Positions 4,435-58,100 of a DNA stretch of 64,000 nt are shown piece by piece (position 1 is the stretch's first letter; every line of letters starts with the position of its first letter). This DNA comes from Callorhinchus milii. Lineage: Eukaryota. The position numbers and the translations under genes were made by a program. The DNA lies in NCBI RefSeq assembly GCF_018977255.1, contig NW_024704742.1, forward strand, positions 137,640,001 to 137,704,000, in the 5' to 3' direction. The notes under the pieces are model-generated. The model was given only the letters and a program-made list of their open reading frames with translations, made no database searches and was not told the DNA's origin.

Positions 4435-5115
4435 CTCCTGAGCCCCTCCCCCTGAGCCCCTCCCCCTGAGCCCCTCCCCCTGAGCCCCTCCCCCTGAGCC
4501 CTCCCCCTGAGCCCCTCCCCCCGAGCCCCTCCCCCGAGCCCCTCCCCCCGAGCCCCTCCCCTGAGCCCCTCCCCTGAGCCCTCCCCCTGAGCCCCTCCCC
4601 CTGAGCCCCTCCCCCCGAGCCCCTCCCCCGAGCCCCTCCCCCTGAGCCCCTCCCCCTGAGCCCCTCCCCTGAGCCCTCCCCCTGAGCCCCTCCCCCCGAG
4701 CCCCTCCCCCCGAGCCCCTCCCCCCGAGCCCCTCCCCCTGACCCCTCCCCCTGAGCCCCTCCCCCAGAGCCCCTCCCCCAGAGCCTCTCCCCCAGAGCCT
4801 CTCCTTTGTGCCTCTCCCCTGAGCCCCTCCCCCAAGCCCTCCCCCTGAGCCCCTCCCCCCAAGCCCCTCCCCCTGAGCCCTCCCCTGAGTCCCTCCCCCT
4901 GAGCCCCTCCCCTGATCCCTCCCCCTGAGTCCCTCCCCCTGAGCCCCTCCCCCTGAGTCCCTCCCCTGAGCCCCTCCCCCTGAGTCCCTCCCCCAGAGCC
5001 TCTCCTTTGTGCCTCTCCCCCTGAGCCCTCCTCCTGAGCCCTTCCCCTGAGCCCCTCCCCCCAAGCCCTCCCCCTGAGCCCTCCCCCCAAGCCCCTCCCC
5101 CTGAGCCCCTCCCCA
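4435..5115. repeat. C-rich minisatellite, about 14-bp unit tgagcccctccccc; G-quadruplex-prone on minus strand
   Basis: Direct tandem units visible over about 680 bp. Confidence 0.92.
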
Positions 5116-9547: not shown

Positions 9548-9599
9548 ATGATGCTGGGAGCTGTGCTCTGTACCCTGGTCCTGTCAGCCTCGGCCTTCC
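9548..9599 (+). CDS. Gene A exon 1, signal peptide [17 protein letters not shown]
   Basis: Hydrophobic 17-mer, phase-1 donor c|GTACGT. Confidence 0.85.
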
Positions 9600-12500
9600 G
9601 TACGTACTTTCCAATCAGAAACCTGACTGGCTTTAATTACTGCTTTACCTTTTACTGGAATAATTACAGTCATGTGATATCTCCTGCAAATAAGATTCCC
9701 GTCTCTAAACTGAACAGAACTGTGTTACTCACTGAGCCCCACAGTGTAAGTGTTTGCCTCACCCTTTGGAACTCCATCCCACAGTCCCTTCCCCTCACCC
9801 CTCTCTTGATGTCCTCCCGACATGAAAGGTGCTATACAATTTGTTGTTGAATCGGTGATCTTCCCATCCTGCGCAGAATACTGTCTGTGATGAGGTGAGC
9901 AGGATACGTCCCTCTGGGGACAAAGTGCACATCTCATTCCAGACACACAGACATTTCCAGATATAGGTGGAATTCTGAGTAGTTTGGTTTGAAGACTCTT
10001 CAGCGCAGTGATGAGTTTCCTCTGTTATCAGACACCCGGCTGATCGCAAACAAAGTGTCTGTGCCGGCGCTAGTTCTCACTGCAGCTCTGTATTCTACTG
10101 CAGTTTCTCACTCTTAAAATGATGGTATTTTTGTAGCATGAAAACAGCCCCTCCGCCCGTTCATTCCATTTTAAACAGTATTATTTGCTTCACCAGCTGC
10201 TCAGTCTTACCCTGTGTCTCGCTCACTCTCCCTCCCCCCAAAAAACATTTAATATTCCTCCTCTTCAAACATCTATCCAATTCCTTTCAAAAGACTTGAC
10301 TGTGGATTCATGTAGCTCAGTGGTTTGCACACTCACCTCAAAGGTGAGAAACCTGGGTTCGATTCCCAGCAGGCGAAAGGTTAGGCAAGTTTCCCTACTC
10401 CACAAGCTTCTGTTTATCTAGAAGTAAGTAAGAACCCGGTTGTTAGTCGATTGGCAGATCACTTTTCTGGGGGTATTAATTCCTTCAAAATAAATGATAT
10501 TAAATTGGTCACTCAATTCACGACTGTTTGTTGGTCACTGCTGTGGACTATTGGCTGCTGCATTTCTCCCACAAAATATACAGTCAATTCACTTGAGAGC
10601 ATATCCTGTGAAGCGCTTTGGGACGACTCAAAGACGTAATAAGGTGCTATATCAAATGCAAGGGTTACTTTATTATTATTGATGGACTTTGCCTCAACTC
10701 CGGTTTGTTACCTGTCTGCTTTTATGTTGTGTTCTGGTTCACATTACACCATGTGTGTCCTCACAGGGCTCAGTAAGAATGGCTGGACGATGGAGATCCC
10801 CGATACAGTGACCGGCAGTTTAGGGTCACCGGTCACCGTGTACTGCAAGTTCACTCACCCTCACCCCAGATACACAGGGAACATCACCATCATGTGGAAT
10901 GCAGGAGGGACTGGTCCTGTGTATATTAAATATACAAATTATAGGCCGGATTCACAGGGAAAGTACCAAAATGTCATTGATGTAAACGAGGGAGAGCGAT
11001 ATCGAGTGATTGGGGATCCGAGGAGGAACGACGCCACAATAGAGATAAACCAACTGAGGGGAGAGGACAATAATAAGCTGTTGTCCTGTCGTGTGGAGCT
11101 CCAGGGTGAGGACGGAAAGTTTGAAACTGGCCCCAAAACACGTCTGATTGTTACAGGTGAGGAACGATGGGAAGTGGGAATGAGACGTGACGTTCCTCAC
11201 TGGGGCCGGAGTCAGTGGGAAGTGTCCCGTCCCAGGACGGGCAATAGAGAGCCAGTGTTCCCTGTGATGGACGGTGTGTAGCAGGGAGCTGACAGGTGAC
11301 AGTGAGTGAGCGGCTGCAGGGAGGGAGGGCTGTGCTGTACACTGACCTGTCACTGAGCACCTGGAGGCTGAGGCGGCCTCACTGTTGGGTTGTCTATTTG
11401 CCGAGGCCCCTCACATGAGGACCTGGATTCAGCAGCTGGTGATCAGTAAGCCTGGGACGGCAATGGATCTCGAGAACATCAAGGTGGCTGGCAGGTCACA
11501 AACTGCCCTGTAAGGTTCTCCCACCACAAAGCCGGTGTAAAGCAGGGACTGGCTCCACAGTGACATACCAGGCCACAGGACGTCGGGCAGGAGTCAACCC
11601 TCTGTGGGGGTCTCTAGTCTGGTTCCTGAGCCAGGCGGTCGCAGTACTCCAGGGCACTGCTGATTTGGCATCAGCCTCATTGGCAGACCAGTCACTGGGC
11701 GCGACCATTCCCACTCAGCTCAATAACACCACAGATCTACACAAGCAGCAGGAAGCTTGCCACACAGTGCCGTCACTGGCCAACTGTGCTGTGGAGTCCT
11801 GTAGTGTAGTGGTTAGAGCACTCGCCTCACAAGCGAGAAGGCCTGAGTTCGATTCCCGGCAGTGTCAAACCTTGGGCAAGTTTCCTTACTCGACACGCCT
11901 CTGTTTACCTATCAGTAAGTAGGAACGTGGTTGTTAGTCGATTAGTGGATCACCTCGGGGGGTAATAATCTCTCCAAAAATAATTTTAAAAAGAATTTGG
12001 TTGCTCAATCACCGATATTTTGATGCAACACTGCTGGCGCAATTGGCTGCTGCATTTCTCCCACAAAATATGCAGTCAATTCACTTGAGAGCATATCCTG
12101 TGAAGCGCTTTCGGACGACTCAAAGACGTAATAAGGTGCTATATCAAATGCAAGGGTTACTTTATTATTATTGATGGACTTTGCCTCAACTCCGGTTTGT
12201 TACCTGTCTGCTTTTATGTTGTGTTCTGGTTCACATTACACCATGTGTGTCCTCACAGGGCTCAGTGGGAATGGCTGGACGATGGAGACCCCCGATACAG
12301 TGACCGGCAGGTTAGGGTCACCGGTCACCGTGTACTGCAAATTCACTCACCCTCACCCCAGATACACAGGGAACATCACCATCATATGGAATGCAGGAAG
12401 GACTGGTCCTGTGTATATTAAATATACAAATTATGGGCCGGATTCACAGGGAAAGTATCAAAATGTCATTGATGTAAATGAGGGAGAGCGATATCGAGTG

Positions 12501-15500
12501 ATTGGGGATCCGAGGAGGAACAACGCCACAATAGAGATAAACCAACTGAGGGGAGAGGACAATAATAAGCTGTTGTCCTGTCGTGTGGAGCTCCAGGGTG
12601 AGGACGGAAAGTTTGAAACTGGCCCCAAAACACGTCTGATTGTTACAGGTGAGGAACGATGGGAAGTGGGAATGAGATGTGACGTTCCTCACTGGGGCCG
12701 GAGTCAGTGGGAAGTGTCCCGTCCCAGGACGGGCAATAGAGAGCCAGTGGTCCCTGTGATGGACGGTGTGTAGCAGGGAGCTGACAGGTGACAGTGAGTG
12801 AGCGGCTGCAGGGAGGGAGGGCTGTGCTGTATACTGACCTGTCACTGAGCACCTGGAGGCTGAGGCGGCCTCACTGTTGGGTTGTCTATTTGCCGAGGCC
12901 CCTCACATGAGGACCAGCAGCTGGTGATCAGTAAGCCTGGGACGCGGCAATGGATCTCGAGAACATCAAGGTGGCTGGCAGGTCACAAACTGCCCTGTAA
13001 GGTTCTCCCACCACAAAAAAGCCGGTGTAAAGCAGGGACTGGCTCCACAGTGACATACCAGGCCACAGGACGTCGGGCAGGAGTCAACCCTCTGTGGGGT
13101 CTCCAGTCTGGTTCCTGAGCCAGGCGGTCGCAGTACTCCAGGGCACTGCTGATTTGGCATCAGCCTCATTGGCAGACCAGTCACTGGGCGCGACCATTCC
13201 CACTCAGCTCAATAACACCACAGATCTACACAAGCAGCAGGAAGCTTGCCACACAGTGCCGTCAATGGCCAACTGTGCTGTGGAGTCCTGTAGTGTAGTG
13301 GTTAGAGCACTCGCCTCACAAGCGAGAAGGCCTGAGTTCGATTCCCGGCAGTGTCAAACCTTGGGCAAGTTTCCTTACTCGACACGCCTCTGTTTACCTA
13401 TCAGTAAGTAGGAACGTGGTTGTTAGTCGATTAGTGGATCACCTCGGGGGGTAATAATCTCTCCAAAAATAATTTTAAAAAGAATTTGGTTGCTCAATCA
13501 CCGATATTTTGATGCAACACTGCTGGCGCAATTGGCTGCTGCATTTCTCCCACAAAATATGCAGTCAATTCACTTGAGAGCATATCCTGTGAAGCGCTTT
13601 CGGACGACTCAAAGACGTAATAAGGTGCTATATCAAATGCAAGGGTTACTTTATTATTATTGATGGACTTTGCCTCAACTCCGGTTTGTTACCTGTCTGC
13701 TTTTATGTTGTGTTCTGGTTCACATTACACCATGTGTGTCCTCACAGGGCTCAGTGGGAATGGCTGGACGATGGAGACCCCCGATACAGTGACCGGCAGG
13801 TTAGGGTCACCGGTCACCGTGTACTGCAAATTCACTCACCCTCACCCCAGATACACAGGGAACATCACCATCATATGGAATGCAGGAAGGACTGGTCCTG
13901 TGTATATTAAATATACAAATTATGGGCCGGATTCACAGGGAAAGTATCAAAATGTCATTGATGTAAATGAGGGAGAGCGATATCGAGTGATTGGGGATCC
14001 GAGGAGGAACAACGCCACAATAGAGATAAACCAACTGAGGGGAGAGGACAATAATAAGCTGTTGTCCTGTCGTGTGGAGCTCCAGGGTGAGGACGGAAAG
14101 TTTGAAACTGGCCCCAAAACACGTCTGATTGTTACAGGTGAGGAACGATGGGAAGTGGGAATGAGATGTGACGTTCCTCACTGGGGCCGGAGTCAGTGGG
14201 AAGTGTCCCGTCCCAGGACGGGCAATAGAGAGCCAGTGGTCCCTGTGATGGACGGTGTGTAGCAGGGAGCTGACAGGTGACAGTGAGTGAGCGGCTGCAG
14301 GGAGGGAGGGCTGTGCTGTACACTGACCTGTCACTGAGCACCTGGAGGCTGAGGCGGCCTCACTGTGGGGTTGTCTATTTGCCGAGGCCCCTCACATGAG
14401 GACCTGGATTCAGCAGCTGGTGATCAGTAAGCCTGGGACGCGGCAATGGATCTCGAGAACATCAAGGTGGCTGGCAGGTCACAAACTGCCCTGTAAGGTT
14501 CTCCCACCACAAAAAAGCCGGTGTAAAGCAGGGACTGGCTCCACAGTGACATACCAGGCCACAGGACGTCGGGCAGGAGTCAACCCTCTGTGGGGGTCTC
14601 TAGTCTGGTTCCTGAGCCAGGCGGTCGCAGTACTCCAGGGCACTGCTGATTTGGCATCAGCCTCATTGGCAGACCAGTCACTGGGCGCGACCATTCCCAC
14701 TCAGCTCAATAACACCACAGATCTACACAAGCAGCAGGAAGCTCGCCACACAGTGCCGTCACTGGCCAACTGTGCTGTGGAGTCCTGTAGTGTAGTGGTT
14801 AGAGCACTCGCCTCACAAGCGAGAGGGCTTGGGTTTGATTCCCGGCAGTGTCAAACCTTGGGCAAGTTTCCTTACTCGACACGCCTCTGTTTACCTATCA
14901 GTAAGTAGGAACGTGGTTGTTAGTCGATTTGTGGATCACCTCGGGGGGTAATAATCTCTCCAAAAATAATTTTAAAAAGAATTTGGTTGCTCAATCACCG
15001 ACATTTTGTTGCAACACTGCTGGCGCAATTGGCTGCTGCATTTTTCCCACAGTCAATTAACTTTGCAGTATATTCTGTAAAGCGTTTTGAGATGTCTCAA
15101 TAGCGTGATATCAAATGCAAGTTTTATTATTATTATTATTATTATGCTGTTTCCGCTGGTTGAACTCCAGCCTCACACACACCCACACAAGCCTTGCACT
15201 TGCCAACATGTGCATAATACTCTCTGAATTGGATACTCAGAGTGGATATATATGTAGAACTCTCTCTCTGGTTTAGATACTCTCAACAATGGTGACAGAT
15301 TTCTGTATGTATCAGGCAATTGGCTGCCCCAACACATGAGGAGGGGTTGTCTCCATGGATCTACACCATCTGAAATGGTTGTTCAACAACAACAATAACG
15401 TCCATTTATATAATGCCCCTCGTGCAGGGCAGCATCCCAGAGCCTTCATAACCATTCAGGGTAGTTCATCTCAGTAAACTGGCTGCAAAACAGTCACTAC

Positions 15501-18500
15501 ACTTGCCTGTAATCATGTTATTGGTCCTATAAACATCCCAGGTTTTGTGTGTGAGACATTGTGCTGCCCACAGGCTCATAGAGGGTGAGTGAGGAGCACA
15601 GGCCTGAGGGAGATGGTGCCATGAAGAGCAGGTAACATATCCAGGATTTCACAGTGTGTAACATGTACTCTGTCACACTGACTGCTCTGCACTATTCCAA
15701 TCCTGTTCCTGTCTCAGGTCATGAAGAGAAGCTCCGGTCAGTGACTGGTACCAAGGGAGGTGATGCCACACTGCCCTGCTCCTTCAACAGGCCCAGCACA
15801 TACCAGAATCGTGCCACAGTCACAGTGCTTTGGAGGAGAGGGAGGCCACATGGGCAGCTGGTGTTTAATTACACTCTTGGCCTCACCGCCCACACCAACT
15901 CCAGGGAGTCAGAGACAGTGAATGAAGGAAATCGCTACAAGCTGGTCAGGAATGTGGGAGATGGAGACGCTTCCCTGAAGATCAGGGGCCTGGAGTTAAA
16001 CGACACCGGACGGTATTTCTGTCACGTACACGTCATGTTTATAATGGAAGGATCCCATCAGGACCAGGTGACACAGGACATGTCACGGCTGCAGGTTGTT
16101 GGTAAGAGATCTCTTGTCTCTGTGGGACACGGAAAGGGGTGAATGAACCGGTCATCACTGACGCAATGTTACAGACGAGGTTTGTCTCATTCCTTACCCT
16201 GTTCCTCATGTGTTAATTAGCACAAGAAACATGGTATCAAAAGGAGGAGACTTTAGTTTGTTACTGGGGGCAGGGTTTCCTTCCCACTTGTCCTGTTAAC
16301 CCTACAAGCTAAAGCCTTGGGCTGGACAACCAGCGGGAAGCTTGGCAATGACAAATAATGTATTTTTGACTGGATCCAGGATTGGTCTGGATGAAGAAGG
16401 TCCATCTGATCTTAACCTTACAGAACCCCCCGCTCCCACCCCCACCACCCCAATCACTTTTTAAATGAGTCCCAGTGTCCTGGCGTCAGCCACCATTCCT
16501 TTCCTCTCAGATACATCAAGAGGTCACAGGGTCAGGGTTGTGATGGGCAAAATAAGAACAGATACCAGGAAGTATTTCTTTGCCCGGAGGGTAATTAATG
16601 GCTGGAAGTGGTTACCAGGAAGGGTGGTTGAGGCCGGACACTGGGACTCATTGCAGAAAGAGTTCGATTTAGTAACATCGACAGTGTAGTTAAGGGTCGG
16701 AAGGTTGAGATCAAATGGACTTTCTTCACACAAACCTCTTTTGTGATCGTATGACTGGGAGCAGGGTTTCTGCACACTTGGCTCCTGTTAACCCTGCAAG
16801 CTAAAGCCAAATATACAACATACTGATGTTTTACACATTTGATATTAAATGTTTCTCATTAACAAATATCTAAAGAAATTTCACAAGATACAACAACAAA
16901 TTACATTTATATAGCGTCTTTCTCGTCAGTTGAACATCTCAGAGCGCTGGCGACCCGAATAGACCCGAATATTAAACAAATGAATTTTGAAAGTGTTTGA
17001 AATGGAACATTATGAACAACCTGAAGATATACAAGAAAAGAGAAGGAATTAGAATAGAGAGCACCAGTGGGGGAGTGAGCACCAGCACAGACACGATGGG
17101 GAGAGAGCAGGGAATGGGGTTAGAGTAGAGAGCTCCAGTGGGGAGTGAGCACCAGCACAGACACGATGAGGACAGTTGTTTGGTTTGAATAACTCTGTGT
17201 TTCTTTATACCTGAAGCTCCGGCCGTCATCCTGAGTCTGTCCCTCGTGGCCGGTGATGGAGTCGGAGTTGACATCGTGTGCACGGCTGAGGGGGAACCAC
17301 CGGCCAACATCACATGGATCGACCCTGAGAATAACACGCTGCCCATTAACACCAGCCACACGCCAGTCACACACTTAGTGGACAAACATCAAACCGTGGG
17401 GGAGATCCGGGGCCCGAGACTGAGGGGAAGTTACCGCTGTGTAGCTGAGAACACACAGGGCAGAGACGCCCGAGACATCCTCGCACCTGGACCACAGAGT
17501 GATGGGGACAGACAGAGCGATGGCAGCTTCATCACTGTGATGCTGAGCCTGATGCCAGCAGCTAAATGTCTCTTTCTGTTGGTGATCGGGATCGTTCTTG
17601 TCTGTAATACACAAGGTTTGTCAATCCTTTGCTGTTTGTATCTTAAATACAAAACCACTGAAGCTCAACTGGTTATGATATATAACACAATGCCGTACAG
17701 TCACTATTTTACAGTAAAATTCCCTGAAGCACTTTGAGATATCTTTATTATGTCTAAACAAGCACAGAAATCACGACACTTCACAGTAACATCCTGTGAA
17801 GAGTATTCAGATGTTTAACCATGTGATGAGACGCTGCATCAAATGGAAGTATTATTATAACTGAAGTGCTTTGTCAGATGTAGTGATCGCATTTCTGTCA
17901 GCAAACGCTGCAGCCAGTTAGTGCGCAGCAAAGTCCCACACCCAGCAGTGATGTGGACGACCAGTTGATCTGGAGGATTGCTGGCCAGGACACTCGGAGA
18001 AACTCCTTTCTTTTTTCTTATTGTGTCGTGTGATCATGAGCCTGGAGAGCACGACAACTGAGCCAAGCTAACTTTCTGTCTCTCACATTAATCTGACTAT
18101 TAATATATCAATTGCCCCTCCATCTCTGAGGCCTGAAATTCCAGCCGGACAGACCATTCGGGCTTTAACTTTGTCACAAGTCTTAATAACTTCCCAATTA
18201 CTCCTCTATCACCTCGTACCCCACTGCTCTGCCCATCCCCCTTTGCTCAGCTAACACAGGGCTGCTGTGCGTCGCCTGACCCCTCCACACCAGCATCAGT
18301 GGCCGTGCCTCCTGTCACTATGGCCCTAATCTCTGTAACTCCCTGCCTCAGTTCCTGTTTTTTTACAACTCATTATATTGAAATCCCACCTTGATACCTA
18401 CCTGAACATGGGGTAGGTCTAGTCTCCTCAAAGTCCACTTCTCTGCCTGCCCACTTTGCTCAGGTAACACAGTCCAGTGTAGGTGGGATGCTCGGAACTC

Positions 18501-18848
18501 TTAAACATGGTGTTGGGTTTCAATATTGTCTTTGACTGTGCCTATGGTTACCTCGCCCTTCAACCTTGCCACTATACAGAGCTCTGGGACGCTTTCCTGT
18601 GTGAATACAAGTTGTTGTTGTTGTTGGATTTACCCCATTTCTGTACCACCCTGGGTTTGTGGGCAAAACATCTCAAAGGCTGAGACGAGGTGGAATTTTG
18701 CGATTCTGTTGAGCCTTTGAGAACATGGGAACCCGTGACTCCCAATAACAGTGTTTGTTTGGCTGAAACATGATCTCATTCTTTTTCTTCACTGATAGAT
18801 TCAAGGCGTCTCCATCCTGAGGCCAAGAAAAGAAGGAGCTCTATATAG
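9548..18848 (+). CDS. SIGLEC15-like: Gene A: Siglec-15-like activating-type receptor (leader, V1a, V1b, V1c, V2, C2+TM with Lys, short tail); 684 aa if all exons used, 424 aa with one V1
   Basis: All introns GT-AG, all junctions phase 1, open frame; motifs [29 protein letters not shown] and TM Lys match Siglec-15 as recalled. Confidence 0.8.
10304..10680 (+). mobile_element. tRNA-derived SINE upstream of V1a
   Basis: A/B boxes, (tta)n tail; orthologous copies at about 24460-24812 (B) and 62340-62665 (C). Confidence 0.7.
10767..11156 (+). CDS. Gene A V1a exon, Siglec-type V-set with essential Arg (codon 11090-11092)
   Basis: tcctcacAG acceptor, g|GTGAGG donor, 390 bp phase 1-1, Cys/Trp/Cys framework. 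Confidence 0.9.
11793..12172 (+). mobile_element. Chimeric tRNA-Val-derived SINE at duplication junction 1
   Basis: 5' part matches the 14779-15145 SINE, 3' part matches the 10304-10680 SINE. Confidence 0.75.
12259..12648 (+). CDS. Gene A V1b exon (duplicate V-set)
   Basis: Intact splice sites and frame; 7 aa differ from V1a. Confidence 0.85.
13282..13661 (+). mobile_element. Chimeric SINE at duplication junction 2
   Basis: Same chimeric structure as 11793-12172. Confidence 0.75.
13748..14137 (+). CDS. Gene A V1c exon (duplicate V-set, same protein as V1b)
   Basis: Intact splice sites and frame. Confidence 0.85.
14779..15145 (+). mobile_element. tRNA-Val-derived SINE downstream of V1
   Basis: gtagtgtagtggttagagcactcgcctcacaagcg head; orthologs about 27336-27750 (B) and 60390-60727 (C). 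Confidence 0.75.
15718..16101 (+). CDS. Gene A V2 exon, second V-set (RYFCHVH, no Arg after Cys)
   Basis: cctgtctcAG acceptor, g|GTAAGA donor, 384 bp; LPC, VLW, DTGRYFC. Confidence 0.9.
17049..17168. repeat. 71-bp intronic minisatellite, about 2 units
   Basis: gagctccagtgggggagtgagcaccagcacagacacgatg; about 3 units at 29672-29866, about 1.5 at 58145-58256. Confidence 0.8.
17217..17615 (+). CDS. Gene A C2-set, stalk and TM exon; [27 protein letters not shown] with Lys at 17564-17566
   Basis: cctgaAG acceptor shared with B and C; [12 protein letters not shown]; donor g|GTTTGT (weaker) keeps phase 1. Confidence 0.82.
18799..18848 (+). CDS. Gene A terminal exon (D)[15 protein letters not shown]
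   Basis: Pyrimidine-rich acceptor, phase-1 compatible, paralog at 113-162, AATAAA at 19313. Confidence 0.72.
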
Positions 18849-19312: not shown

Positions 19313-19318
19313 AATAAA
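19313..19318 (+). promoter_or_regulatory. Polyadenylation signal of gene A
   Basis: AATAAA plus downstream GT-rich tract, conserved with 833-838. Confidence 0.5.
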
Positions 19319-23751: not shown

Positions 23752-26700
23752 GTACGTACTTTCCAATCAGAAACCTGACTGGCTTTAATTACTGCTTTAC
23801 CTTTTACTGGAATAATTACAGTCATGTGATATCTCCTGCAAATAAGATTCCCGTCTCTAAACTGAACAGAACTGTGTTACTCACTGAGCCCCACAGTGTA
23901 AGTGTTTGCCTCACCCTTTGGAACTCCATCCCACAGTCCCTTCCCCTCACCCCTCTCTTGATGTCCTCCCGACATGAAAGGTGCTATACAATTTGTTGTT
24001 GTTGAATCGGTGATCTTCCCATCCTGCGCAGAATACTGTCTGTGATGAGGTGAGCAGGATACGTCCCTCTGGGGACAAAGTGCACATCTCATTCCAGACA
24101 CACAGACATTTCCAGATATAGGTGGAATTCTGAGTAGTTTGGTTTGAAGACTCTTCAGCGCAGTGATGAGTTTCCTCTGTTATCAGACACCCGGCTGACC
24201 GCAAACAAAGTGTCTGTGCTGGCGCTAGTTCTCACTGCAGCTCTGTATTCTCATCCAGTTTCTGACTGTTAAAATGTTTGCATTTTTGTAGCACGAAAAC
24301 AGCCCCTCCGCCCGTTCATTCCATTTTAAAAATTGTTATTTTCTTCACCAGCTGCCCATTCACACCCTCTGGCTCGCTCTCTCCCCCTCACCCCAAACCC
24401 TTTAATATTCCTCCTCTTCATACATCTATCCCATTCCCTTTGGTAGACTTGACAGTGGATTCCTGTAGCACTTGCCTCGCAGGCGAGAGGCATGAGCTCG
24501 ATTTCCGGCAGGTCTGAAAGTTGGGAAACTTTCCTTACTCCACTCATTTTTGCTTACCTAGCAGCAATTAGGAACCTGCTTGATCCATCGACTGGTGGAT
24601 CGCTTTTCCATGCGTAATAATTCCTTCAGAAAAAATAATAATAAATTGATCAATCAGTCTACAACTGTATGTGGGGCATCGCTGATCACAATTGGCTTCT
24701 GCTTGTTGTTCACAAAATGTACAGTCAATTCACTTTATGCAAAGCGCTTTGAGACGCCTCGAAAATGAGAAAAGGTGCTAGATCAAATGCAAGGATAATT
24801 ATTATTATTATTCTGAGTGACGGAATTTGTCTCAACTCCGTTTGTGACAGAAAATTTCACAATCCCACCTTCTCTGTGTACAGACAGGGTTTTTAACCTC
24901 CTCTCAATTTCTTTTTTTGTGATGGTTTTAGATTAATTCCTGACTGGCTGAGGAGAGGATAAATCTATTTTTGTGAATCTCTGAACCTTTGTGACCTCTA
25001 TCAGGTCACCCCTAACCTTCTCAGCCCTCGAAAAAAAAGCCCCAACCTCTCAAATCTCTTTTAGTAACTCAAAACCCTAATCCCTGAGTACATCACCAAA
25101 CTGCAACTTTATCATTGCTTTTATATCCTTCTTACTGGGGGTCCCAAAACTGTCCACAATACTCCCAGCTGTGACCTAACCAAGCTCTTGTACAAGCTCA
25201 GTGTTACCTGTTGTGTTTATATTTGTGTTCTGGTTCACATTACACCATGTCTGTCCTCACAGGGCTCAGTGAGAATAACTGGACGATGGAGACCCCCGAT
25301 ACAGTGACCGGCAGGTTAGGGTCACCGGTCACCGTGTACTGCAAGTTCACTCACCCTCACCCCAGATACACAGGGAACATCACCATCATGTGGAAGGGAG
25401 ACTGGACTGGTCCTGCGCATTTTAATTATACAAATTATGGGCCGGATTCACAGGGAAAGTATCAAAATGTTATTGATGTAAACGAGGGAGAGCGACACCG
25501 AGTGATTGGGGACCCGAGAAGGAACGACGCTACAATAAAGATAAACCAACTGAGGGGAGAGGACAATAATAAGCTGTGGTCCTGTCGTGTGGAGCTCCAG
25601 GGTGAGGACGGAAAGTTTGAAACTGGGCCCAGAACACGTCTGATTGTTACAGGTGAGGAACGATGGGAAGTGGGAATGAGACGTGACGTTCCTCACTGGG
25701 GCCGGAGTCAGTGGGAAGTGTCCCGTCCCAGGACGGGCAATAGAGAGCCAGTGTTCCCTGTGATGGACGGTGTGTAGCAGGGAGCTGACAGGTGACAGTG
25801 AGTGAGCGGCTGCAGGGAGGGAGGGCTGTGCTGTACACTGACCTGTCACTGAGCACCTGGAGGCTGAGGCGGCCTCACTGTGGGGTTGTCTATTTGCCGA
25901 GGCCCCTCACATGAGGACCTGGATTCAGAAGCTGGTGATCAGTAAGCCTGGGACGTGGCAATGGATCTCGAGAACATCAACAACAACAACAACAACAACA
26001 AGATTCCATTTATAGAGCGCCTTTCACGTCAGGAGGACGTCCCAAGGCGCTGCACAGTTGGGTCATGACCCGAGCAGGGGGGAAATGGTCAGGGTGAGGG
26101 GAGGGAAGGGAGGGAGAGAGGAGGGGGAAATGGTCAGGGTGAGGGGAGGGAAGGGAGGGAGCGAGGAGGAGGAAGAGAGTCGAGAGGGGAGCTGAAGGCT
26201 CGGTCAAAGAGAAAGGTTTTGAGACCGGCCTTGAAGGAGGAAAGGGAGGAAGCGGCGAAGGCACTGGGGGATGGAGTTCCAGAGCCTCGGGGCTGAGAGG
26301 CTGAAGGCCCGACCACCGATAGTAGGGCGGTTGGGGCGGGGGACGTGGAGCAGACCGGAGCCAGAGGAACGGAGGGTACGGGCAGGTAGGTAGGGGATAG
26401 TAGGTTGGAGAGGTAGGAGGGAGCAAGGCCGTGAATGGCCTTGTAGGTGAGGATGAGGATCTTGAAATCAATCCTCTGGGGGATGGGGAGCCAGTGGAGG
26501 CGAGCGAGGGTAGGAGTGATGTGGTCCCGAAGCCTGGTGCGGGACAGTACACGAGCTGCAGAGTTCTGAATGACCTGCAGTGTGGAGGGAGGTGCCGGGA
26601 AGGCCGGCGAGGAGAGAGTTCCCATAGTCCAGCCTTGAGGTGACAAAGGCGTGAACCAGGGTTTCAGCAGCGTGAGGGGTGAGGTAGTGCCGTAGTCTGG

Positions 26701-29700
26701 CGATATTCCGGAGGTGATGGAAGGCGGTGCCAGTTGTGGTGCGGATGTGAGGGAGAAAGGACAGCTCAGGGTCGAACAAAACGCCGAGGTTCCTGACTGG
26801 CTTTGAGAGGTGGAGAGTGCAGCCTTGGATGCTGATGGTGTCAGCGCCTGAGGTGCGGAGGCGCTGACGTGAGCCAATCAGGAGGGCCTCGGTTTTTCGC
26901 ACGTTGAGCTGAAGAAAGTTGTCTCTCGTCCAGGACTCGATGTCGGACAGGCAGCTGTCAGGACATCGGTGGTCGTGGAGTTGAGAGTAGAGGAGGAAAG
27001 GTAGAGTTGGGTGTCATCAAGGTGGCTGGCAGGTCACAAACTTCCCTGTAAGGTTCTCCCACCACAAAAAAGCCGGTGTAAAGCAGGGACTGGCTCCACA
27101 GTGACATACCAGGCCACAGGACGTCGGGCAGGAGTCAACCCTCTGTGGGGGTCTCTAGTCTGGTTCCTGAGCCAGGCGGTCGCAGTACTCCAGGGCACTG
27201 CTGATTTGGCATCAGCCTCATTGGCAGACCAGTCACTGGGCGCGACCATTCCCACTCAGCTCAATAACACCACAGATCTACACAAGCAGCAGGAAGCTTG
27301 CCACACAGTGCCGTCACTGGCCAACTGTGCTGTGGAGTCCTGTAGTGTAGTGGTTAGAGCACTCGCCTCACAAGCGAGAGGGCTTGGGTTTGATTCCCGG
27401 CAGGGAGAAAGCTTGGGCAAGTTTCCTTACTGTACAGGCCTCTGTTTACCTAGCAATGAATTGGAACATGATTGGTAGTCGATTGGTGGATCACCTCTGG
27501 GGGTAATAATCTCTCGAAAAATAATTTTAAAAATAATTTGGTCACTTAATCACCGACTGTTTGTGGGACACTGCTGGCACAATTGACTGCTGCATTTTTC
27601 CCACAAAATATACAGTCAATTCACTTTACAGTACATTCTGTGAAGCGCTTTCAGATGTCTCAACAATTTGAGATCAAATGCATGTATTATTATTTTTATT
27701 ATTATTATGATTATTATTATTATTATTATTATTACTATTATTATTATTATGCTGTTTTTGCTCCAATTTGCCCCAAACACATACTCTGGTGTCCCCAAGC
27801 CTTGCACTTGCCAACATGTGCATAATACTCTCTGAATTAGATACTCAGAGTGGATATATATGGAGTACTCACTCTCTGCTTTAGATACTCTCTACAACAG
27901 TGACAGATTTCTGTATGTATCAGGAAATCAGCTGCCCCAACACATGAGGAGGGATTTTCTCCTTGGGTTTACACCAACAATCCTCCACCTGAATTAGGTT
28001 GTTCAACAAAAATAATAACTTGTATTTATACAACACCCCTTGTACAGGGCGGCATCCCAGAGCCTTCATAACCATTGGGGTCCTTCATCTGAGTAAACTC
28101 GCTGCAAAACAGTTCCTACATTTGCCAGTAATCATGTTATTAGTGCTATAAAAAAACAGGGTTAGACTGTGAAACATTGTGCTTCCAAGAGGCTCATAGA
28201 GGGTGAGTGAGGAGCACAGGCCTGAGGGAGATGGTGCCATGAAGAGCAGGTAACATATCCAGGATTTCACAGTGTGTAACATGTACTCTGTCACACTGAC
28301 TGCTCTGCACTATTCCAATCCTGTTCCTGTCTCAGGTCATGAAGAGAAGCTCCGGTCAGTGACTGGTACCAAGGGAGGTGATGCCACACTGCCCTGCTCC
28401 TTCACCATCCCCAACACATACCAGAATCGTGCCACAGTCACAGTGCTTTGGAGGAGAGGGAGGCCACATGGGCAGCTGGTGTTTAATTACACTCTTGGCC
28501 TCGCCGACCGATCCAACTCCAGGGAGTCAGAGACAGTGAATGAAGGAAATCGCTACAAGCTGGTCAGGAATGTGGGAGATGGAGACGCTTCCCTGAAGAT
28601 CAGGGGCCTGGAGTTAAACGACAATGGACGGTATTTCTGTCACGTACACGTCATGTTTATTATGGAAGGATCCCATCAGGACCAGGTGACACAGGACATG
28701 TCACAGCTGCTGGTTGTTGGTAAGAGATCTCTTGTCTTTGTGGGACACGGAAAGGGGTGAATGAACAGGTCATCACTGACGCAATGTTACAGACGAGGTT
28801 TGTCTCATTCCTTACCCTGTTTGTCATGTGTTAATTAGCACAAGAAACATGGTATCAAAAGGCGGAGACTTTAGTTTGTTACTGGGGACAGGGTTTCTTA
28901 CCACTTGTCTCCTGTTAACCCTACAAGCTAAAGCCTAGGGTGATCCTCGCTGGACAAGCAGCGGGAAGCTTGACAATTATAAATAATGTGTTTTTGACTA
29001 GATCCAGGATTGGTCTAGATAGAAGGTTCATCTGATGTTATCCTTAAAGAACACCAGCAACAAAATCACATTTATAGAGGCCCTTTCACATCAGGAGGAT
29101 GACTGAAAGTGCTGAACGGAGCTCGAGCATGGGGAATGGGTGATGAAGGGGTGAGGGAAGATAGAAATGTGGGAGGATGACCCAAAGAGAAGGGTCTTGA
29201 GACTGGCCTTGAAAGAGGCAAGGGAGGCAGAGCATCGAGACAGTTCAGATGACACCAAGGCAGCAGAGAGGGAGCTGGGAGGGAGATTGTTTTCCAGGGG
29301 CGGTAGGAAATTGAGGTGGGATGGATTGAATGGTGGTGGGAAGAGGGATTGAGGAGTTGAATGAGATGAAGTGATGGTCCGAGATGATTTTGTCGGTGAT
29401 GGTGAGGTCCGAGATGGTGAGGCCCTGAGTGATGACCAAGACGAGAGGGTAACCGCGGAAGTGGGAGATGGAGGGGATGTGGAGGAAGAGGTTGAGGGAG
29501 GAGGTTAGGGAGGAGAAGTCAGCAGAGGTAGAGCAGGAGGGCTGAAGTGAAGGTTGAATTCCGAAGGTGCTGGGACCCAAATGGACTTGAATATTGGAAA
29601 AAGGAATTTTGAAAAGTGTTTAAAATGGAACATTGTGAACAACATGAAAATGCACAAAAAAAGAGAAGGGATTAGAGTAGAGAGCTCCAGTGGGGGAGTG

Positions 29701-32700
29701 AGCACCAGCACAGACACGATGGGGAGAGAGCAGGCAATGGGGTTAGAGTAGAGAGCTCCAGTGGGGGAGTGAGCACCAGCACAGACACGATGGGGAGAGA
29801 GCAGGGAATGGGGTTAGAGTAGAGAGCTCCAGTGGGGGAGTGAGCACCAGCACAGACACGATGGGGACAGTTGTTTGGTTTGAATATCTGTGTTTCTTTA
29901 TACCTGAAGCTCCGGCCGTCATCCTGAGTCTGTCCCTCGTGGCTGGAGGTGACATTGTGTGCACGGCTGAGGGGAAACCACCGGCCAACATCACGTGGAT
30001 CGACCCCAAGAATAACACGCTGCCCATTAACACCAGCCACACGCCAGTCACACATGTACCGGACAAGCATCAAACCGTGGGGGAGATCCGGGGCCCGAGG
30101 CTGAGGGGAACTTACCGCTGTGTAGCTGAGAACACACAGGGCAGAGACACCCGAGACATCCTCGCACCTGGACCACAGAGCAATGGTGGTCGTACTGTAT
30201 ATATCGTGGTATCCATTGTGGTGCTGCTCGTTCTGGTGACTGCCATCATTATCTGGCGGGTAAAGAGAGGTAGGTGTTTACAGACAAAGGTAATGTTTAT
30301 TCCAAGTGAGTCTGTCTCAGCCGCTCGCACTCTCACCTCTGGCTCAGCAGATTATCTGCCGCGGTTATCTCCATAACAACATTCACTTTCAATTGTAATT
30401 ACTGTATAGCGCTGCCTATCCACACACTGGGTATCCCGATCCATGCAGTGGATATATATATCCTTGTTTCCCATTATCCACATGCAACAAGAACAACAAA
30501 TTACATTTGCATTGCACCTTTCACATTCACATCTTGAAGACTGAGGTAGATAGCTATTTGTTAGGTCAAGGTATTAAGGGATATGGGGCAAGGGCAGGTA
30601 ATTGAACTTGAGGTACAGATCAGCTATGATCTTATAGAATGGCGGAACAGGCTGGAGGGGCTGAATGGCCTACTCCTGTTTCTATGTTTCACGTAGGTAG
30701 GATGGCCCAAGGGGCTGCACAGTCAGTGATCTGGACCCCAGATGGGGATTGGGATCAGGGAGTTTGGAGGCCAAAGAGAGGAGGGTGACCAAAGGTGTGG
30801 TCAAAGCGAAGGGTCAGGACATGAAGGAAGTAAGGGAGAGATCGAGGTGAAGGGACAGTGGGATGGAATTCCAAAGTATGGGGGTAAAGAGGCTGAAGGC
30901 CTGACAAATACAGAGTGAGGGAGAGCTGAGACAGCCAGAGAAGGAAAGGTAGACAGAGAGATACAGAATCACTCAGAAACCTGATAATTGTACTGTTTTA
31001 AAAATCACAAAGCAATTAATGATGTGAAGCTCAAAGCGTGAATGCAAATGTATGGTGATCTTGCTGAAATGGGCATTGGATTAAGACGGTGAAAGCCTCT
31101 GAGTACTTTCATTACCGGCACTTACACCGGCACTTCTTCAGCACACTGAGCAGTGGCCAGTGACTACCAATAGACGCAACTGGGGGTGGGATTAGAGACC
31201 ACCAGTGGGGGAGAGAGCACCAGCACAGACATAGTTGAGCTAATGGCTTCTTTGGATGGTGATATGAGCCTGGCTTCCTGCTTCAGTAACACCACACAAC
31301 AGGAAAAGGAGAGTTTGCCACAAGTCTTTCACTGGAATAAAATGTGCACGAACAAAGGTCATCAGCAAACTGTCTAAAGCAATCTCTCATCTTTCTTTGA
31401 TCTCTTCAGGTGGTGGTGTCGGACATTGCTGCCAGTGTTCACAGAGGTGAGAAATCCCTTTACTTGTATATTCACATTCAAGTTGCTAATTGCTATTGAT
31501 TGTGTGGAGAGTGGAGTGGGCTACGGAGAATGGGGTGTGGAGAATGGGGTATGGAGAGTGGAGTTGGGTGCAGAGAATGAGGTTGTGTGGAATTAGACTA
31601 CCAAGACCACCACAGAGGGTGGACTATATTCCGACATGCCATTGCCAAATTTCACCTTAGAGCCCGCTCATCCCTAAGGAGACCCTACTTACTAACCCAC
31701 CTCCCAAAAAAGTCACAAATCCCACACGCAGCTATGAGTTAAATCGTTTTCTCGGGGTTTGGACCTGCGATCACACCGGTCTCTACGTTCACCCATTCAC
31801 TGGAAAACACGTTGAGCCAAAAGAGAAGCATGCTAATAAGGGAAGTGACATCAGTGGTCTCTTTCAACAGCGTGATGTTGGTCCTTTAGTAATTATTATA
31901 ATAATCCTTGCATTTTGATATAGCGCATTATCACATCTTTGACACGTCTCAAAGCCCTTCACAGAATATACTTAAAATGAAATGACTGTATAGTATGTGG
32001 GCTAGACACAGCAGCCAATTAAGCACAGCAGTGTCCCACAAACAGTCGTGGATTGAATGACCAAATTATTTATTTATTCATTTTGAAGGGATTATTACCC
32101 CTGGAAAAGTGATCCCCCAATCAACTAGCAAACTAGCAAATATGGGGACAAAACAAAATCCAGGAAGGGACTATTATTTAAATGGTAAGAAAATACAATA
32201 CACAATACAAAATTACATTTGTATAGCACCTTTCACGTCGGGAGGATGTCCCTGAAAATAATCTGTACGGAAAATGAAAAGGACCAGGGGATCCCGATTG
32301 ACAATAAATTGAAGCTATCGCAACACTGATCAGCAAACCAGATGGTGGGTTGCATTAAAAGGGCAGTATTGAGCTGAAATAGTAGGGTAATCCTGCCACT
32401 TTATAAATCACTGGTGCAACCGCACTGGAATACTATGTGCAGTTGTAGTCACCGCAATATAAAAAGGCAATATGATTAAGGTCTTTAAGATTCTGAAAGG
32501 AATAGATATGGTAGACCATGACAAGCTCTTTTATCTTGTACTGAACAGTAGAACCAGAGGTCACGGACTGTGATTGAAGGGGGTTAAATTCAGAACAATC
32601 TGTGGAAATACTGCTTCAGTGAGCGAGCAGTAAATTTATGGAACAGACTCCTTAAGGAGACAGTGGAAGCAGAAAATGTCATTTGTTTCGAGAACGAATT

Positions 32701-55100: not shown

Positions 55101-58100
55101 AACTGGAAACCGTACAATAATATCTGGATACCTCTTGAGTGATATCGAACTGTACAACAATAATTGGATTCCTTTTGATGGATATCTAATTGGATTAAAA
55201 AGAACAGATTAAAATGGACATTAAATTGGACATTGCTCCTCTATGTCTCTCACAGCATTTGTTTTGATCAATTTAAATTGTTGTGAACTACGGTATACAT
55301 GGATATGTAAGCATAATTGGATACATTCTTTTAATTATTTATAACCATTATTAATCTGAATTGTGATTAATTGTACAACAACAGCGTCTCTCATGTCAGG
55401 GATCTTCACCAATCACTTCACGGAAAAGCAGCACGATGCTAACCCAGGTGGGGTGGGGGAGGGGAAGGTCCAACAGGAAGGTCTTCAGGCGCGACCTGAA
55501 GATGGAAAAGGAAGGGGCAATGTGGTGGGATAGAGGAAGAGTGTTCCAGAGTGGGGCTTAGGTAAATAGTGTCTCTTTGGGCTTCGCTGGCTACAAAGTT
55601 AGATGCTTGGCAACGGAATGTAATGGTCTCTAGTTCGGTTCGTTAGACAGGAAGGTCTGCAGTATTCCAGGCACTGCTGGTGATAGCAGGACTTGGAAGG
55701 GAGAGCAGTCACTGGGGGCAGGGAATCCTCCCACTCAGCTCCTGCTAACCCTGCAAGTCAAAGCCCTAACAGTGAGGGTGGTCCAAGCTGGAGAGGGAAG
55801 CAGGAAGCTTTCCAGATACAGGGCTCAACAGCAATTAGGAACTTGGAAGTGGATGTAACAGTGAAGGGATTAGAAAGACGCTCTCACCTCTCTGAACACT
55901 GACAGCAATGTCCGACACCATCAGCTGAAGAAATTAAAGAAAGATGAGAGAATGATTTAGATGGTTTGCTGATGACCTTTGTTAGTGCACATGTTATTCC
56001 AGTTAAAGACTTGTGCAAACTCTCCTCTTCCTGTTGTGTGGTGTAACCATGGCTACTGAAGCAGGAAGCCAGGCTCATGTCACCATCCAAAGAAGCCATT
56101 AGTTCCACTGTGTCTGTGCTGGTGCTCTCTCCCCCACTGGAGCTCTCTACCCTAATCCCATCCCTGCTCTCTCTCCCCATGGCGTCTGTGCTGGTGCTCG
56201 CGCCCCCACTGGAGCTCTCTACCCTAATCCCATTCCCTGCTCTCTCTCCCCATGGCGTCTGTGCTGGTGCTCTCTACCCGACTGGAGCTCTCTACCCTAA
56301 TCCCATCCCTGCTCTCTCTCCCCATGGCGTCTGTGCTGGTACTCGCGCCCCCACTGGAGCTCTCTACCCTAATCCCATTCCCTGCTCTCTCTCCCCATGG
56401 CGTCTGTGCTGGTGCTCTCTACCCGACTGGAGCTCTCTACCCTAATCCCATTCCCTGCTCTCTCTCCCCATGGCGTCTGTGCTGGTGCTCTCTACCCGAC
56501 TGGAGCTCTCTACCCTAATCCCATCCCTGCTCTCTCTCCCCATGGCGTCTGTGCTGGTACTCGCGCCCCCACAGGAGCTCTCTACCCTAATCCCATTCCT
56601 GCTCTCTCTCCCCATGGCGTCTGTGCTGGTGCTCTCTCCCCCACTGGAGCTCTCTACCCTAATCCCATCCCTGCTCTCTCTCCCCATGGCGTCTGTGCTG
56701 GTGCTCGTGCCCCCACTGGAGCTCTCTACCCAAATCCCATCCCTGCTCTCTCTCCCCATGGCGTCTGTGCTGGTGCTCTCTCCCCCACTGGAGCTCTCTA
56801 CCCAAATCCCATCCCTGCTCTCTCTCCCCATGGCGTCTGTGCTGGTGCTCTCTCCCCCACTGGAGCTCTCTACCCTAATCCCATCCCTCCTCTCTCTCCC
56901 CATGGCGTCTGTGCTGGTGAAGGAGAGATTGTTGGCCCCATTAATTGTTATTGGGCACTTTGTGTGAGGAATCAGGTTTCCATGTGTCTCTCTCTGCGTC
57001 TCTAACTGTATGTGGGGATTTATCTCCTAAGAATCAATGGATATTGCGACACCCTGTCTGTGCTGGCGCTCAAGTGAATAAGGTAATAGGAGGATATCTG
57101 ATGATTAGGTAACAGCAGAGGGAATATCTCGTCTGTGGTTATCAGGATCTGGGGCGACCCGTCCTGTGTCTGAGCAGATACCCAGTGTGTGGATACACAG
57201 CGTTACACAGCAATTACAATTGACAGTGAATGTTGTTATGGAGGTAACCGCGGCAGATAATCTGCTGAGCCAGAGGTGAGAGTGCGAGCGGCTGAGACAG
57301 ACTCACTTGGAATAAACATTACCTTTGTCTGTAAACACCTACCTCTCTTTACCCGCCAGATAATGATGGCAGTCACCAGAACGAGCAGCACCACAATGGA
57401 TACCACGATATATACAGTCTGACAACCATCACTGTGTCTGTCCCCATCACTGTGTCTGTCCCCATTGCTCTGTCTGTCCCCATCGTTCTGTCTGTCCCCA
57501 TCACTCTGTCTGTCCCCATCACAGTGTCTGTCCCCATCGCTCTGTCTGTCCCCATCGCTCTGTCTGTCCCCATCGCTCTGTCTGTCCCCATCGCTCTGTC
57601 TGTCCCCATCACTCTGTCTGTCCCCATCACAGTGTCTGTCCCCATCGCTCTGTCTGTCCCCATCGCTCTGTCTGTCCCCATCGCTCTGTCTGTCCCCATC
57701 GCTCTGTCTGTCCCCATCACTGTGTCTGTCCCCATCGCTCTGTCTGTCCCCATCGCTCTGTCTGTTCCCATCGCTCTGTCTGTCCCCATCACTCTGTCTG
57801 TCCCCATCACACTGTGATCCAGGTGCGAGGATGTCTCGGGCGTCTCTGCCCTGTGTGTTCTCAGCTACACAGCGGTAAATTCCCCTCAGCCTCGGGCCCC
57901 GGATCTCCCCCACGGTTTGATGTTTGTCCACTACGTGTGTGACTGGCGTGTGGTTGGTGTTAATGGGCAGCGTGTTATTCTCGGGGTTGATCCATGTGAT
58001 GTTGGCCGGTGGTTCCCCCTCAGCCGTGCACACAATGTCAACTCCGACTCCATCACCGGCCACGAGGGACAGACTCAGGATTACAGCCGGAGCTTCAGGT

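Follow-up and report, generated by a model that had tools for sequence, protein, structure and literature searches.

What does a receptor gene make of three lectin-type binding exons standing in a row, and how did they come to stand there? The question is raised by a 64,000-nt stretch of elephant shark DNA (Callorhinchus milii, contig NW_024704742.1, positions 137,640,001 to 137,704,000), which we call the window and whose positions serve as coordinates throughout. A gene that we call gene A carries there three tandem copies, V1a, V1b and V1c, of an exon for a Siglec-type V-set domain. We suggest that the array is a recent, gene A-specific, in-frame triplication of a Siglec-15-like binding-domain exon, mediated by short interspersed elements (SINEs) and most likely read as three lectin domains in series. 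We give this explanation a probability of roughly 0.6. The three exons are the following.

10767-11156, + strand: first copy (V1a), a phase 1-1 exon of 390 bp; V-set of Siglec-15 type, bearing W6, C26, C107, R108, F118 and E119
12259-12648, + strand: middle copy (V1b), a phase 1-1 exon of 390 bp without difference from V1c; carries the N88-A-T sequon and, in the C-C' loop, R47
13748-14137, + strand: last copy (V1c), a phase 1-1 exon of 390 bp with the same sequence as V1b

The exons form a head-to-tail array of 3 x 1.49 kb, with start-to-start spacings of 1492 bp (V1a to V1b) and 1489 bp (V1b to V1c). All three have the same acceptor, ...cctcacag/GGCTCAGT, and the same donor, TTACAG/gtgagg; each needs two bases from its 5' side and leaves one over at its 3' side, and a V1-to-V1 splice reads TTGTTACAG/GGCTCAGTGGGAATGG. 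The three open reading frames (ORFs) and six splice sites are all intact, and every copy keeps L-S-C-R-V-E. The original prediction had described three intact phase 1-1 exons about 1.49 kb apart, each with CRVE, any subset of which would splice in frame. Coordinates, splice sites and frames agree, and the six subsets translated (a, b, ab, bc, abc and none) all run in frame to one common stop codon.

Between V1b and V1c there is no nucleotide difference. V1a differs from them at 11 sites (10775, 10776, 10797, 10819, 10849, 10894, 10907, 10943, 10966, 10987 and 11030), and the site-by-site count gives, as foreseen, 8 non-synonymous differences, which make 7 amino acid changes (K3G, I10T, S17R, M42I, G47R, R59G and D88N, from V1a to V1b/c), and 3 synonymous ones. 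The last change turns RRNDAT into RRNNAT, the expected new N-A-T sequon of V1b/c; N88 is the derived state, because G stands at the nucleotide site in all seven other V1 exons. These comparison exons (two in the window, three more in the locus L002 and one in L003, gene C being seen twice) are all single-copy, hence the triplication is specific to gene A. The limits given for the array, 10550-15043, are exactly where the likeness of the units starts and stops, and the earlier observation is confirmed in every detail.

Both limits fall within SINEs. The repeat units, the SINEs and the single V1 exons of the two neighbouring genes B and C are these.

10305-10690, + strand: SINE-A, tRNA-derived, in intron 1; repeat unit 1 begins within it, at 10550; genes B and C have orthologous copies upstream of V1
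10550-12041, + strand: repeat unit 1, made of the SINE-A tail, V1a, intron and a SINE-B-type head
11795-12182, + strand: hybrid SINE 1, a SINE-B head (tRNA-Val-like) with a SINE-A tail; recombination junction, with the crossover inside the shared TTGGCTGCTGCATTT
12042-13530, + strand: repeat unit 2, with 5 variants private to it, among them a deletion of 7 bp after 12914
13284-13671, + strand: hybrid SINE 2, identical to hybrid SINE 1
13531-15043, + strand: repeat unit 3, ending at the crossover point within SINE-B
14781-15148, + strand: SINE-B, tRNA-Val-like head with its native tail; the downstream recombination partner; genes B and C have orthologues of it downstream of V1
25263-25652, + strand: single V1 exon of gene B, a comparator; uncharged transmembrane segment and tail with an immunoreceptor tyrosine-based inhibitory motif (ITIM); arrangement SINE-A, V1, SINE-B
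61363-61752, - strand: single V1 exon of gene C, a comparator; same SINE-A, V1, SINE-B arrangement as gene B

The repeat units are 98-100% identical across 10550-15043, and ARAGORN finds tRNA-Val-like heads at 11795, 13284 and 14781. In the alignment of the SINEs (n=8 copies) the single V1 of gene B, like that of gene C, has SINE-A on its upstream side and SINE-B on its downstream side. The internal SINEs of gene A join the head of B to the tail of A, including a 10-bp block specific to A, AATAAGGTGC, and the flank that follows the SINE. The switch from head to tail lies within TTGGCTGCTGCATTT, which is common to both SINEs (10551-10565 and 15029-15043). Hybrid SINEs at the junctions together with flanking SINEs of the same orientation therefore point to unequal homologous recombination, which explains the limits 10550-15043 exactly. 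The junctions show that the array originated by recombination between SINEs.

The sequence shows the following course of events. In the ancestral arrangement V1 stood between SINE-A and SINE-B, which had the same orientation. Inside the 15-nt stretch common to them, unequal homologous recombination produced the 1.49-kb unit with its hybrid junctions of B head and A tail, and a second event added the third copy. Through later homogenisation units 2 and 3 came to share 1055 bp without a difference. The non-coding divergence among the units, 0.7-0.8%, is that of a recent duplication. Unit 1 has 17 private events against units 2 and 3, unit 2 has 5, including the 7-bp deletion and 3 substitutions, and unit 3 has 2 substitutions. 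Units 2 and 3 run for 1055 bp without a difference (11777-12831 versus 13266-14320); the 434 bp that follow have 7 differing sites. Such a mosaic is not predicted by one unequal crossover from two to three copies, and a recent conversion between the two units would predict it; the pattern suggests recent conversion between units 2 and 3 rather than a third copy made simply in one step. In their 3' parts the three units are related in a star-like way.

tRNA-derived SINE families are known in C. milii, namely CmiSINE/SacSINE1-CM (PMC5499810). The process resembles nonallelic homologous recombination of the Alu-Alu type, in that SINEs of the same orientation flank the segment, a hybrid SINE stands at each junction and the crossover falls in a short identical stretch. 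It differs in that the elements are tRNA-derived SINEs of a chimaera, of the CmiSINE/SacSINE1-CM kind, and that the product is not disruptive but an in-frame triplication of an immunoglobulin (Ig) domain. The mechanism of the triplication is well known, whereas the architecture is unusual, and the locus is a clear case of SINEs making a new Ig-domain architecture in one recombination step.

The V1 domain is of the Siglec-15 type. It matches the Pfam V-set model with E 1.4e-7 and 32.1 bits (cut-off 26), and among solved structures phmmer places human Siglec-15 (7ZOZ) first with E 4.7e-15 and CD33 next with 4e-7. An AlphaFold2 model of V1a, built with 21 family sequences, has strands A-G and a predicted local distance difference test (pLDDT) score of 92. 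Its top match in a fold search is 7ZOZ_A (template modelling scores 0.87/0.90, root-mean-square deviation 1.4 Å, E 2e-11), and the next one, at 1e-7, is about 5000-fold worse. Written from V1 to Siglec-15, the residues correspond as W6=W44, C26=C64, C107=C142, R108=R143, K117=R153, F118=Y154 and E119=E155, and in this alignment the Arg motif of Siglec-15, FCRVEF, stands against SCRVEL in V1. The likeness takes in the C64-C142 disulfide between strands B and F, R143, W44 that stacks on the N-acetyl group, the G-strand aromatic (Y154, present as F), E155 and the FTHPH motif. In the structure of Siglec-15, the essential salt bridge is that of R143, CH-pi contacts come from W44 and Y154, and E155 forms a hydrogen bond with Neu5Ac (PMC10264397), and the role of R143 in sialic acid recognition is also described in PMC7226832. 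The prediction of a Siglec-type V-set with the essential Arg is borne out by the alignment of R108 with human R143, and the core ligand-contact residues are the same in V1a, V1b and V1c.

Siglec-type sequence features are no guarantee of binding, since zebrafish Siglec-15 is reported to bind the glycans tested poorly (PMC7226832). At the V1 positions aligned with the second disulfide of Siglec-15, C95-C104, no Cys is found (Siglec-15 segment against FRCAAARGSELCQT), and the contact of Y87 has no equivalent in V1, because the C-C' loop is two residues shorter. A PILR-like identity, suspected from the FCRVEL motif, was rejected: the PDB puts Siglec-15 far ahead, and PILR alpha/beta reach only ~1e-4 to 1e-3, with V2 only.

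Beyond the array, gene A contains the following coding exons.

9548-9599, + strand: exon 1 of gene A, with the start codon and the signal peptide; ends in phase 1, donor C/gtacgt; genes B and C and the RefSeq models have the identical peptide
15718-16101, + strand: V2 exon, second V-type domain, phase 1-1; His at the position of Siglec-15 R143 (YFCHVHV)
17217-17615, + strand: C2-set domain, then a short stalk, (DRQSDG)x2, and a transmembrane segment that has Lys at mid-membrane; exon unused in the RefSeq models
18799-18848, + strand: last coding exon of gene A, 16-residue tail and stop; CATAAA poly(A) hexamer ~270 nt downstream

Splice sites are canonical throughout the gene and every junction is of phase 1. 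With the signal-peptide exon upstream of V1 and the C2 and transmembrane exons downstream, the layout is that of a type I membrane protein. V2 and C2 align with the V and C2 domains of Siglec-15 (E 3e-18). V2 has His at the R143 position and no N-terminal GW motif, hence the family baseline is V1(Arg)-V2(no Arg)-C2, and all family members have at least these three domains. The original prediction had taken as its baseline a Siglec with one N-terminal V-set; for this family that does not hold, as every member already has V1 with an Arg-less V2.

Human and mouse Siglec-15 (7ZOZ for the structure), the nearest match of V1 in sequence and fold, has one V-set and one C2-set, whereas gene A has three V1 and the Arg-less V2 before C2. 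Read from its own exons, gene A would share with DAP12-coupled Siglec-15 a C2-set domain followed by a transmembrane segment with a mid-membrane Lys. Siglec-15 is a conserved family member in the literature; here at least eight paralogues stand in tandem, some of them ITIM-bearing, so that the relation to Siglec-15 is not one-to-one, and a different C. milii protein carries the name Siglec-15 isoform X1. Several homologues are named Siglec-15 by NCBI. Judged by these exons, the family is Siglec-15-like in its architecture and does not have the architecture of Siglec-15 itself. The canonical binding Arg is often lost in the family (homologues P0002, P0024, P0004, P0009-P0011 and P0014): in place of the Arg of CRVE, some C. 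milii paralogues have Cys, the C. milii protein that bears the name Siglec-15 X1 has Trp, and several elasmobranch proteins called Siglec-15 have Leu.

How would such an array be spliced? The exon length of 390 = 3 x 130, the introns of 1102 and 1099 nt between the copies and the identical GT-AG character of all sites make serial inclusion of V1 the default expectation, presumably with occasional in-frame skipping. The predicted chain of up to three Arg-bearing V-sets is thus what one would expect, and RefSeq models three and two V1 for LOC103188797: X1 (XP_042192088.1, 738 aa) reads V1a-V1b-V1c-V2, and X2 (XP_042192095.1, 608 aa) reads V1b-V1c-V2. The serial V1 architecture is already predicted in RefSeq, where it is uncharacterised; in the library searched we found no literature on cartilaginous-fish Siglec clusters or on serial-V1 architecture. 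Over their last 126 nt the three exons do not differ, therefore short reads cannot tell the a-to-b, a-to-c and b-to-c junctions from one another.

Hence, we suggest that gene A encodes the ectodomain V1a-V1b-V1c-V2-C2, with three Arg-bearing domains in cis and with minor forms of one or two V1 that would arise by skipping. The 3' end would most likely be gene A's own C2, transmembrane segment with Lys and short tail, giving an activating receptor of the DAP12 type, and the likely effect would be more avidity and a longer reach of the lectin head. More tentative, and in our view rather doubtful, is the full form of this proposal, in which a DAP12-type activating receptor is expressed with three functional cis sialic-acid-binding domains, their number varying from 1 to 3 by splicing and/or between individuals. 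The triplication sits in a large C. milii cluster of paired activating and inhibitory Siglec-15-like paralogues.

Several observations weigh against this proposal. The ratio of non-synonymous to synonymous change (dN/dS) between V1a and V1b/c is 0.78, with no sign that selection maintains the extra copies. RefSeq joins the V1 array to the C2, uncharged transmembrane and ITIM exons of gene B and not to the gene A transmembrane exon with Lys. The poly(A) hexamer of gene A is CATAAA (~19121) and that at the end of a paralogue (window 435) is AATAAA; the CATAAA could weaken gene A's own 3' end. V1b equals V1c within 1055 bp of perfect identity, which also fits a copy-number error. The only genomic record found, IMCB_Cmil_1.0 (GCA_018977255.1, MU249832.1:137,640,001-137,704,000), is the same assembly as the window (0 mismatches over 49.6 kb) and is therefore no independent check of the copy number; a literature search on this assembly turned up no account of its construction. 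A search with the protein across the V1a-V1b junction in a collection of 5.8 billion clusters returned no V1-V1 ORF besides the RefSeq models. Its matches were four clusters, namely P0001 (with the RefSeq models), two single-V1 C. milii clusters (P0028 and P0029) and one from basking shark (P0009), none of them from read-based assemblies. None of the five isoforms with the activating tail (a, b, ab, bc and abc) has an exact match in a collection of 15 billion proteins.

One may ask, first, whether the duplication is real but inert, that is young, probably copy-number-polymorphic and neutral or mildly deleterious, with no gain in binding, for instance if the internal V1 are masked or the extra exons largely skipped. 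The dN/dS of 0.78 is inside the range among paralogue pairs (0.58-0.99), none of the 7 other V1 exons is duplicated, the copies are recent by their non-coding divergence, and V1b/c, to which N88 is private, lack D88, a residue conserved to at least 90% in the family. Three ORFs and six splice sites have nevertheless stayed intact, serial copies of V-type domains are kept across skate genera, and no copy has a change in the core residues that contact the ligand. We regard inertness as possible but less than likely.

The differences between the copies themselves bear on the claim that the array may offer two binding variants. The strand map of the V1a model places G47R in the C-C' loop and R59G in the C'-C'' loop, both belonging to the CC'C''FG face, which is the ligand surface in Siglec-15 (PMC10264397); G47R, and perhaps R59G, is thus on the predicted ligand face. 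The other changes are off that face (D88N is in the D-E turn of the opposite sheet), and the dN/dS does not speak for it. Distinct specificities of V1a and V1b/c are possible on the model. CD33 has, at the position aligned with D88, an Asn within an N-C-S sequon.

All differences between V1a and V1b/c fall within the first 264 nt of the exon, and the exons differ by 2.8% against 0.7-0.8% in the flanking unit sequence. The density of differences is 3.5-4 times that of the flanks (p 0.006-0.01), the synonymous sites share the excess, four of the sites are polymorphic among the paralogues and 7/11 are private to one lineage. The synonymous excess and the polymorphism among paralogues make short conversion tracts plus small numbers the most economical reading, and the amino acid differences look close to neutral. 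Gene conversion from one paralogue as the source of these differences was rejected, as the seven other V1 exons include no donor, and it is at best partial; nor has positive selection any support from a dN/dS of 0.78 based on 11 differences.

The second alternative takes RefSeq at its word. V2 (16101) would be spliced to the C2 exon of gene B (29909), skipping the C2, transmembrane and tail exons of gene A, and the product would be an inhibitory ITIM receptor with three V1. XP_042192088.1 and XP_042192095.1 are built exactly so and have two ITIM-like motifs, VIYSVV and VIYAVV, and CATAAA in place of AATAAA could favour read-through. Such splicing passes over five intact in-phase exons (the C2/transmembrane and tail exons of A; the signal-peptide, V1 and V2 exons of B), and gene B has its own promoter-proximal region and signal-peptide exon, 87% identical to those of gene A. 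LOC103174418 is chimeric likewise over 48 kb, which indicates a systematic modelling artefact, and we consider the inhibitory product unlikely. LOC103188797 runs from gene A to gene B (9548-39569), and X2 of LOC103174418 extends over 48 kb across two intervening paralogues (L002 10001-58461). The RefSeq models here look like chimeras of near-identical tandem paralogues, and those of this cluster need checking before use in comparative immunology.

The gene A exons for C2 with the Lys-bearing transmembrane segment and for the tail are ordered, in phase and 84-94% identical to the product of a paralogue, and a 409-aa gene model of signal peptide, V1, V2, C2 with the Lys-bearing transmembrane segment and tail exists for another paralogue. 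The 3' end of gene A is 96% identical to that of the activating paralogue; the homology stops just past the hexamer, and the next AATAAA is at 19313. A mid-membrane Lys is the contact for DAP10/12 (PMC7226832). The chimeric LOC103174418, the proper 409-aa model and the skipped intact exons together favour the activating model, and by its exons gene A is probably activating, with its own C2, Lys-bearing transmembrane segment and short tail. The predicted label of an activating gene is thus plausible, given intact, in-phase exons of its own, whereas the only public models join the array to the ITIM tail of gene B.

Could the array, third, be an artefact of assembly, the true locus having one or two V1 units and a near-identical tandem repeat having been over-expanded by the assembler? 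V1b equals V1c, units 2 and 3 share their 1055 bp perfectly, the locus is carried by one assembly only, to which the window is identical, and no gene A V1 is found among proteins of the older annotation. Some private differences are, moreover, lengths of homopolymers or dinucleotides (A3 versus A6, a G-run, CG), typical of read errors. The three units are nonetheless pairwise distinct (17 events; the 7-bp deletion with 3 substitutions; 2 substitutions), the junctions are clean hybrid SINEs as expected of real recombination, and the window has no gap and no N in 64 kb. These unit-to-unit differences argue against a trivial assembly duplication, and a copy-number error is still compatible with them. 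The a-type and b-type exons differ by 2.8%, therefore at least two copies are real. We hold an artefact to be improbable.

Mutually exclusive exons are known to arise from exons duplicated in tandem, and the array might be used in this way, with one V1 per mRNA, of a-type or b/c-type, and two alternative binding heads. Like the known mutually exclusive clusters (Dscam-type, steric, U2/U12 or based on nonsense-mediated decay, NMD), gene A has an array of homologous exons between constant ones, and unlike them it has none of their enforcing features. There is a 12-nt perfect complement, TCACCAGCTGCT / AGCAGCTGGTGA, of 10190-10201 in intron 1 with 11431-11442, 12916-12927 and 14412-14423, which places a pairing site ~270 nt downstream of each V1 and extends to 15/17 nt. 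The docking arm is mutated in all seven paralogues without compensating change or covariation, and the upstream arm is perfect only in gene A. Docking/selector pairing of the Dscam kind was rejected, this being a lone, unconserved 12-nt complement and probably due to chance.

Exclusive use is improbable in spite of the general precedent, the frame of any single V1, the position of G47R in the C-C' loop beside the loop that carries the ligand-contacting Y87 in human Siglec-15, the hint of some skipping in the RefSeq isoform without V1a and the joining of intron 1 by the 12-nt complement to a site downstream of each V1: introns of 1102 and 1099 nt pose no steric block, all splice sites are identical GT-AG, double inclusion is frame-neutral at 3 x 130 and cannot be removed by NMD, the complement is unconserved and does not covary in seven paralogues, both RefSeq isoforms have V1 in series, and, V1b being equal to V1c, a three-way choice would yield only two products. 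The cassette choice offered by the original prediction is accordingly unsupported, as none of the four known exclusivity mechanisms (frame, intron length, splice-site type, RNA pairing) applies.

The preferred reading, a serial array in a tandem family, has parallels in other cartilaginous fishes. Homologues from Leucoraja and Amblyraja have V1 + V2x3, models from Hemiscyllium and Chiloscyllium have two CRVE domains, and in Heptranchias perlo isoforms X2 and X3 (P0007 and P0012) have two and one near-identical V2; by its sequence, the Heptranchias pair is an independent, parallel and recent tandem duplication of an Ig exon in the same family. In all of these the phase 1-1 V-type exons of one family are copied in tandem, are predicted in series and sometimes give isoforms one copy apart. 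In most of them it is the Arg-less V2 or a V1-V2 module that was copied, whereas back-to-back Arg-bearing V1x3 is found only in the elephant shark among those compared. As far as predicted proteins go, these homologues show that the family tolerates serial V-type domains.

Among primate Siglecs, Siglec-12 / S2V has two V-set domains by domain duplication (PMC6288428). It is like gene A in that a Siglec ectodomain starts with more than one V-set, and unlike it in having two V-sets that are old and diverged, in a CD33-related and ITIM-bearing receptor; the gene A copies are 97-100% identical and specific to gene A. The paired Siglecs Siglec-5/-14 and Siglec-11/-16 have near-identical binding ends and opposite signalling ends (PMC4042635, PMC5701461). 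The cluster of C. milii resembles them in that neighbours share a ligand-binding end and have ends with a transmembrane Lys or an ITIM, and the polymorphic sites among its paralogues suggest sequence exchange between genes. It differs in that each member of those pairs has one binding V-set, whereas here one partner has multiplied its V-set, and in that the lineage is that of Siglec-15 and not CD33-related.

The cluster comprises at least 8 paralogous V1-bearing genes within ~125 kb, plus one ~0.9 Mb away. Genes B and C have one V1 each, uncharged transmembrane segments and downstream exons matching an ITIM-bearing tail, and beyond the window further paralogues follow in which Lys-bearing and uncharged transmembrane segments alternate. 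At the start of the window a tail exon (112-159, + strand) encodes a 16-residue peptide identical to the C-terminus of the LOC103174418 products, and the end of a further paralogue of activating type presumably lies just upstream of gene A. An assignment of this exon as the end of LOC103174418 itself was set aside: X2 maps downstream on the other strand, and several paralogues have identical tail exons.

Other repeats also vary along the cluster. The stalk of gene C (57426-57808, - strand) is encoded by ~21 copies of an 18-bp coding repeat, (DRQSDG)n, of which gene A has two and gene B none, thus the stalk length differs between paralogues. In the intron upstream of the C2 exon a 71-72-bp tandem repeat is present in gene B (29668-29867, 2.8 copies) and gene C (56112-56919, 11 copies), and related sequence lies upstream of the gene A C2 exon at ~17049-17175. 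A 14-bp C-rich tandem repeat, CCTGAGCCCCTCCC, occupies 4437-5114 with ~50 copies in the intergenic region upstream of gene A.

In the textbook view a Siglec is a lectin that binds through one N-terminal domain, the weak affinity of which is offset by clustering. If gene A is expressed as proposed, it would have a built-in multivalent lectin head, undescribed for any Siglec, and its varying copy number would adjust avidity and reach towards those ligands or pathogens to which its inhibitory neighbours bind with a single head. A natural receptor with three serial binding domains would test the roles of valency and reach in sialoglycan recognition. In mammals the paired activating and inhibitory role is usually ascribed to the CD33-related Siglecs, and Siglec-15 is counted among the conserved ones in the literature; in a chimaera the Siglec-15 lineage grew into a cluster of alternating activating and inhibitory paralogues.

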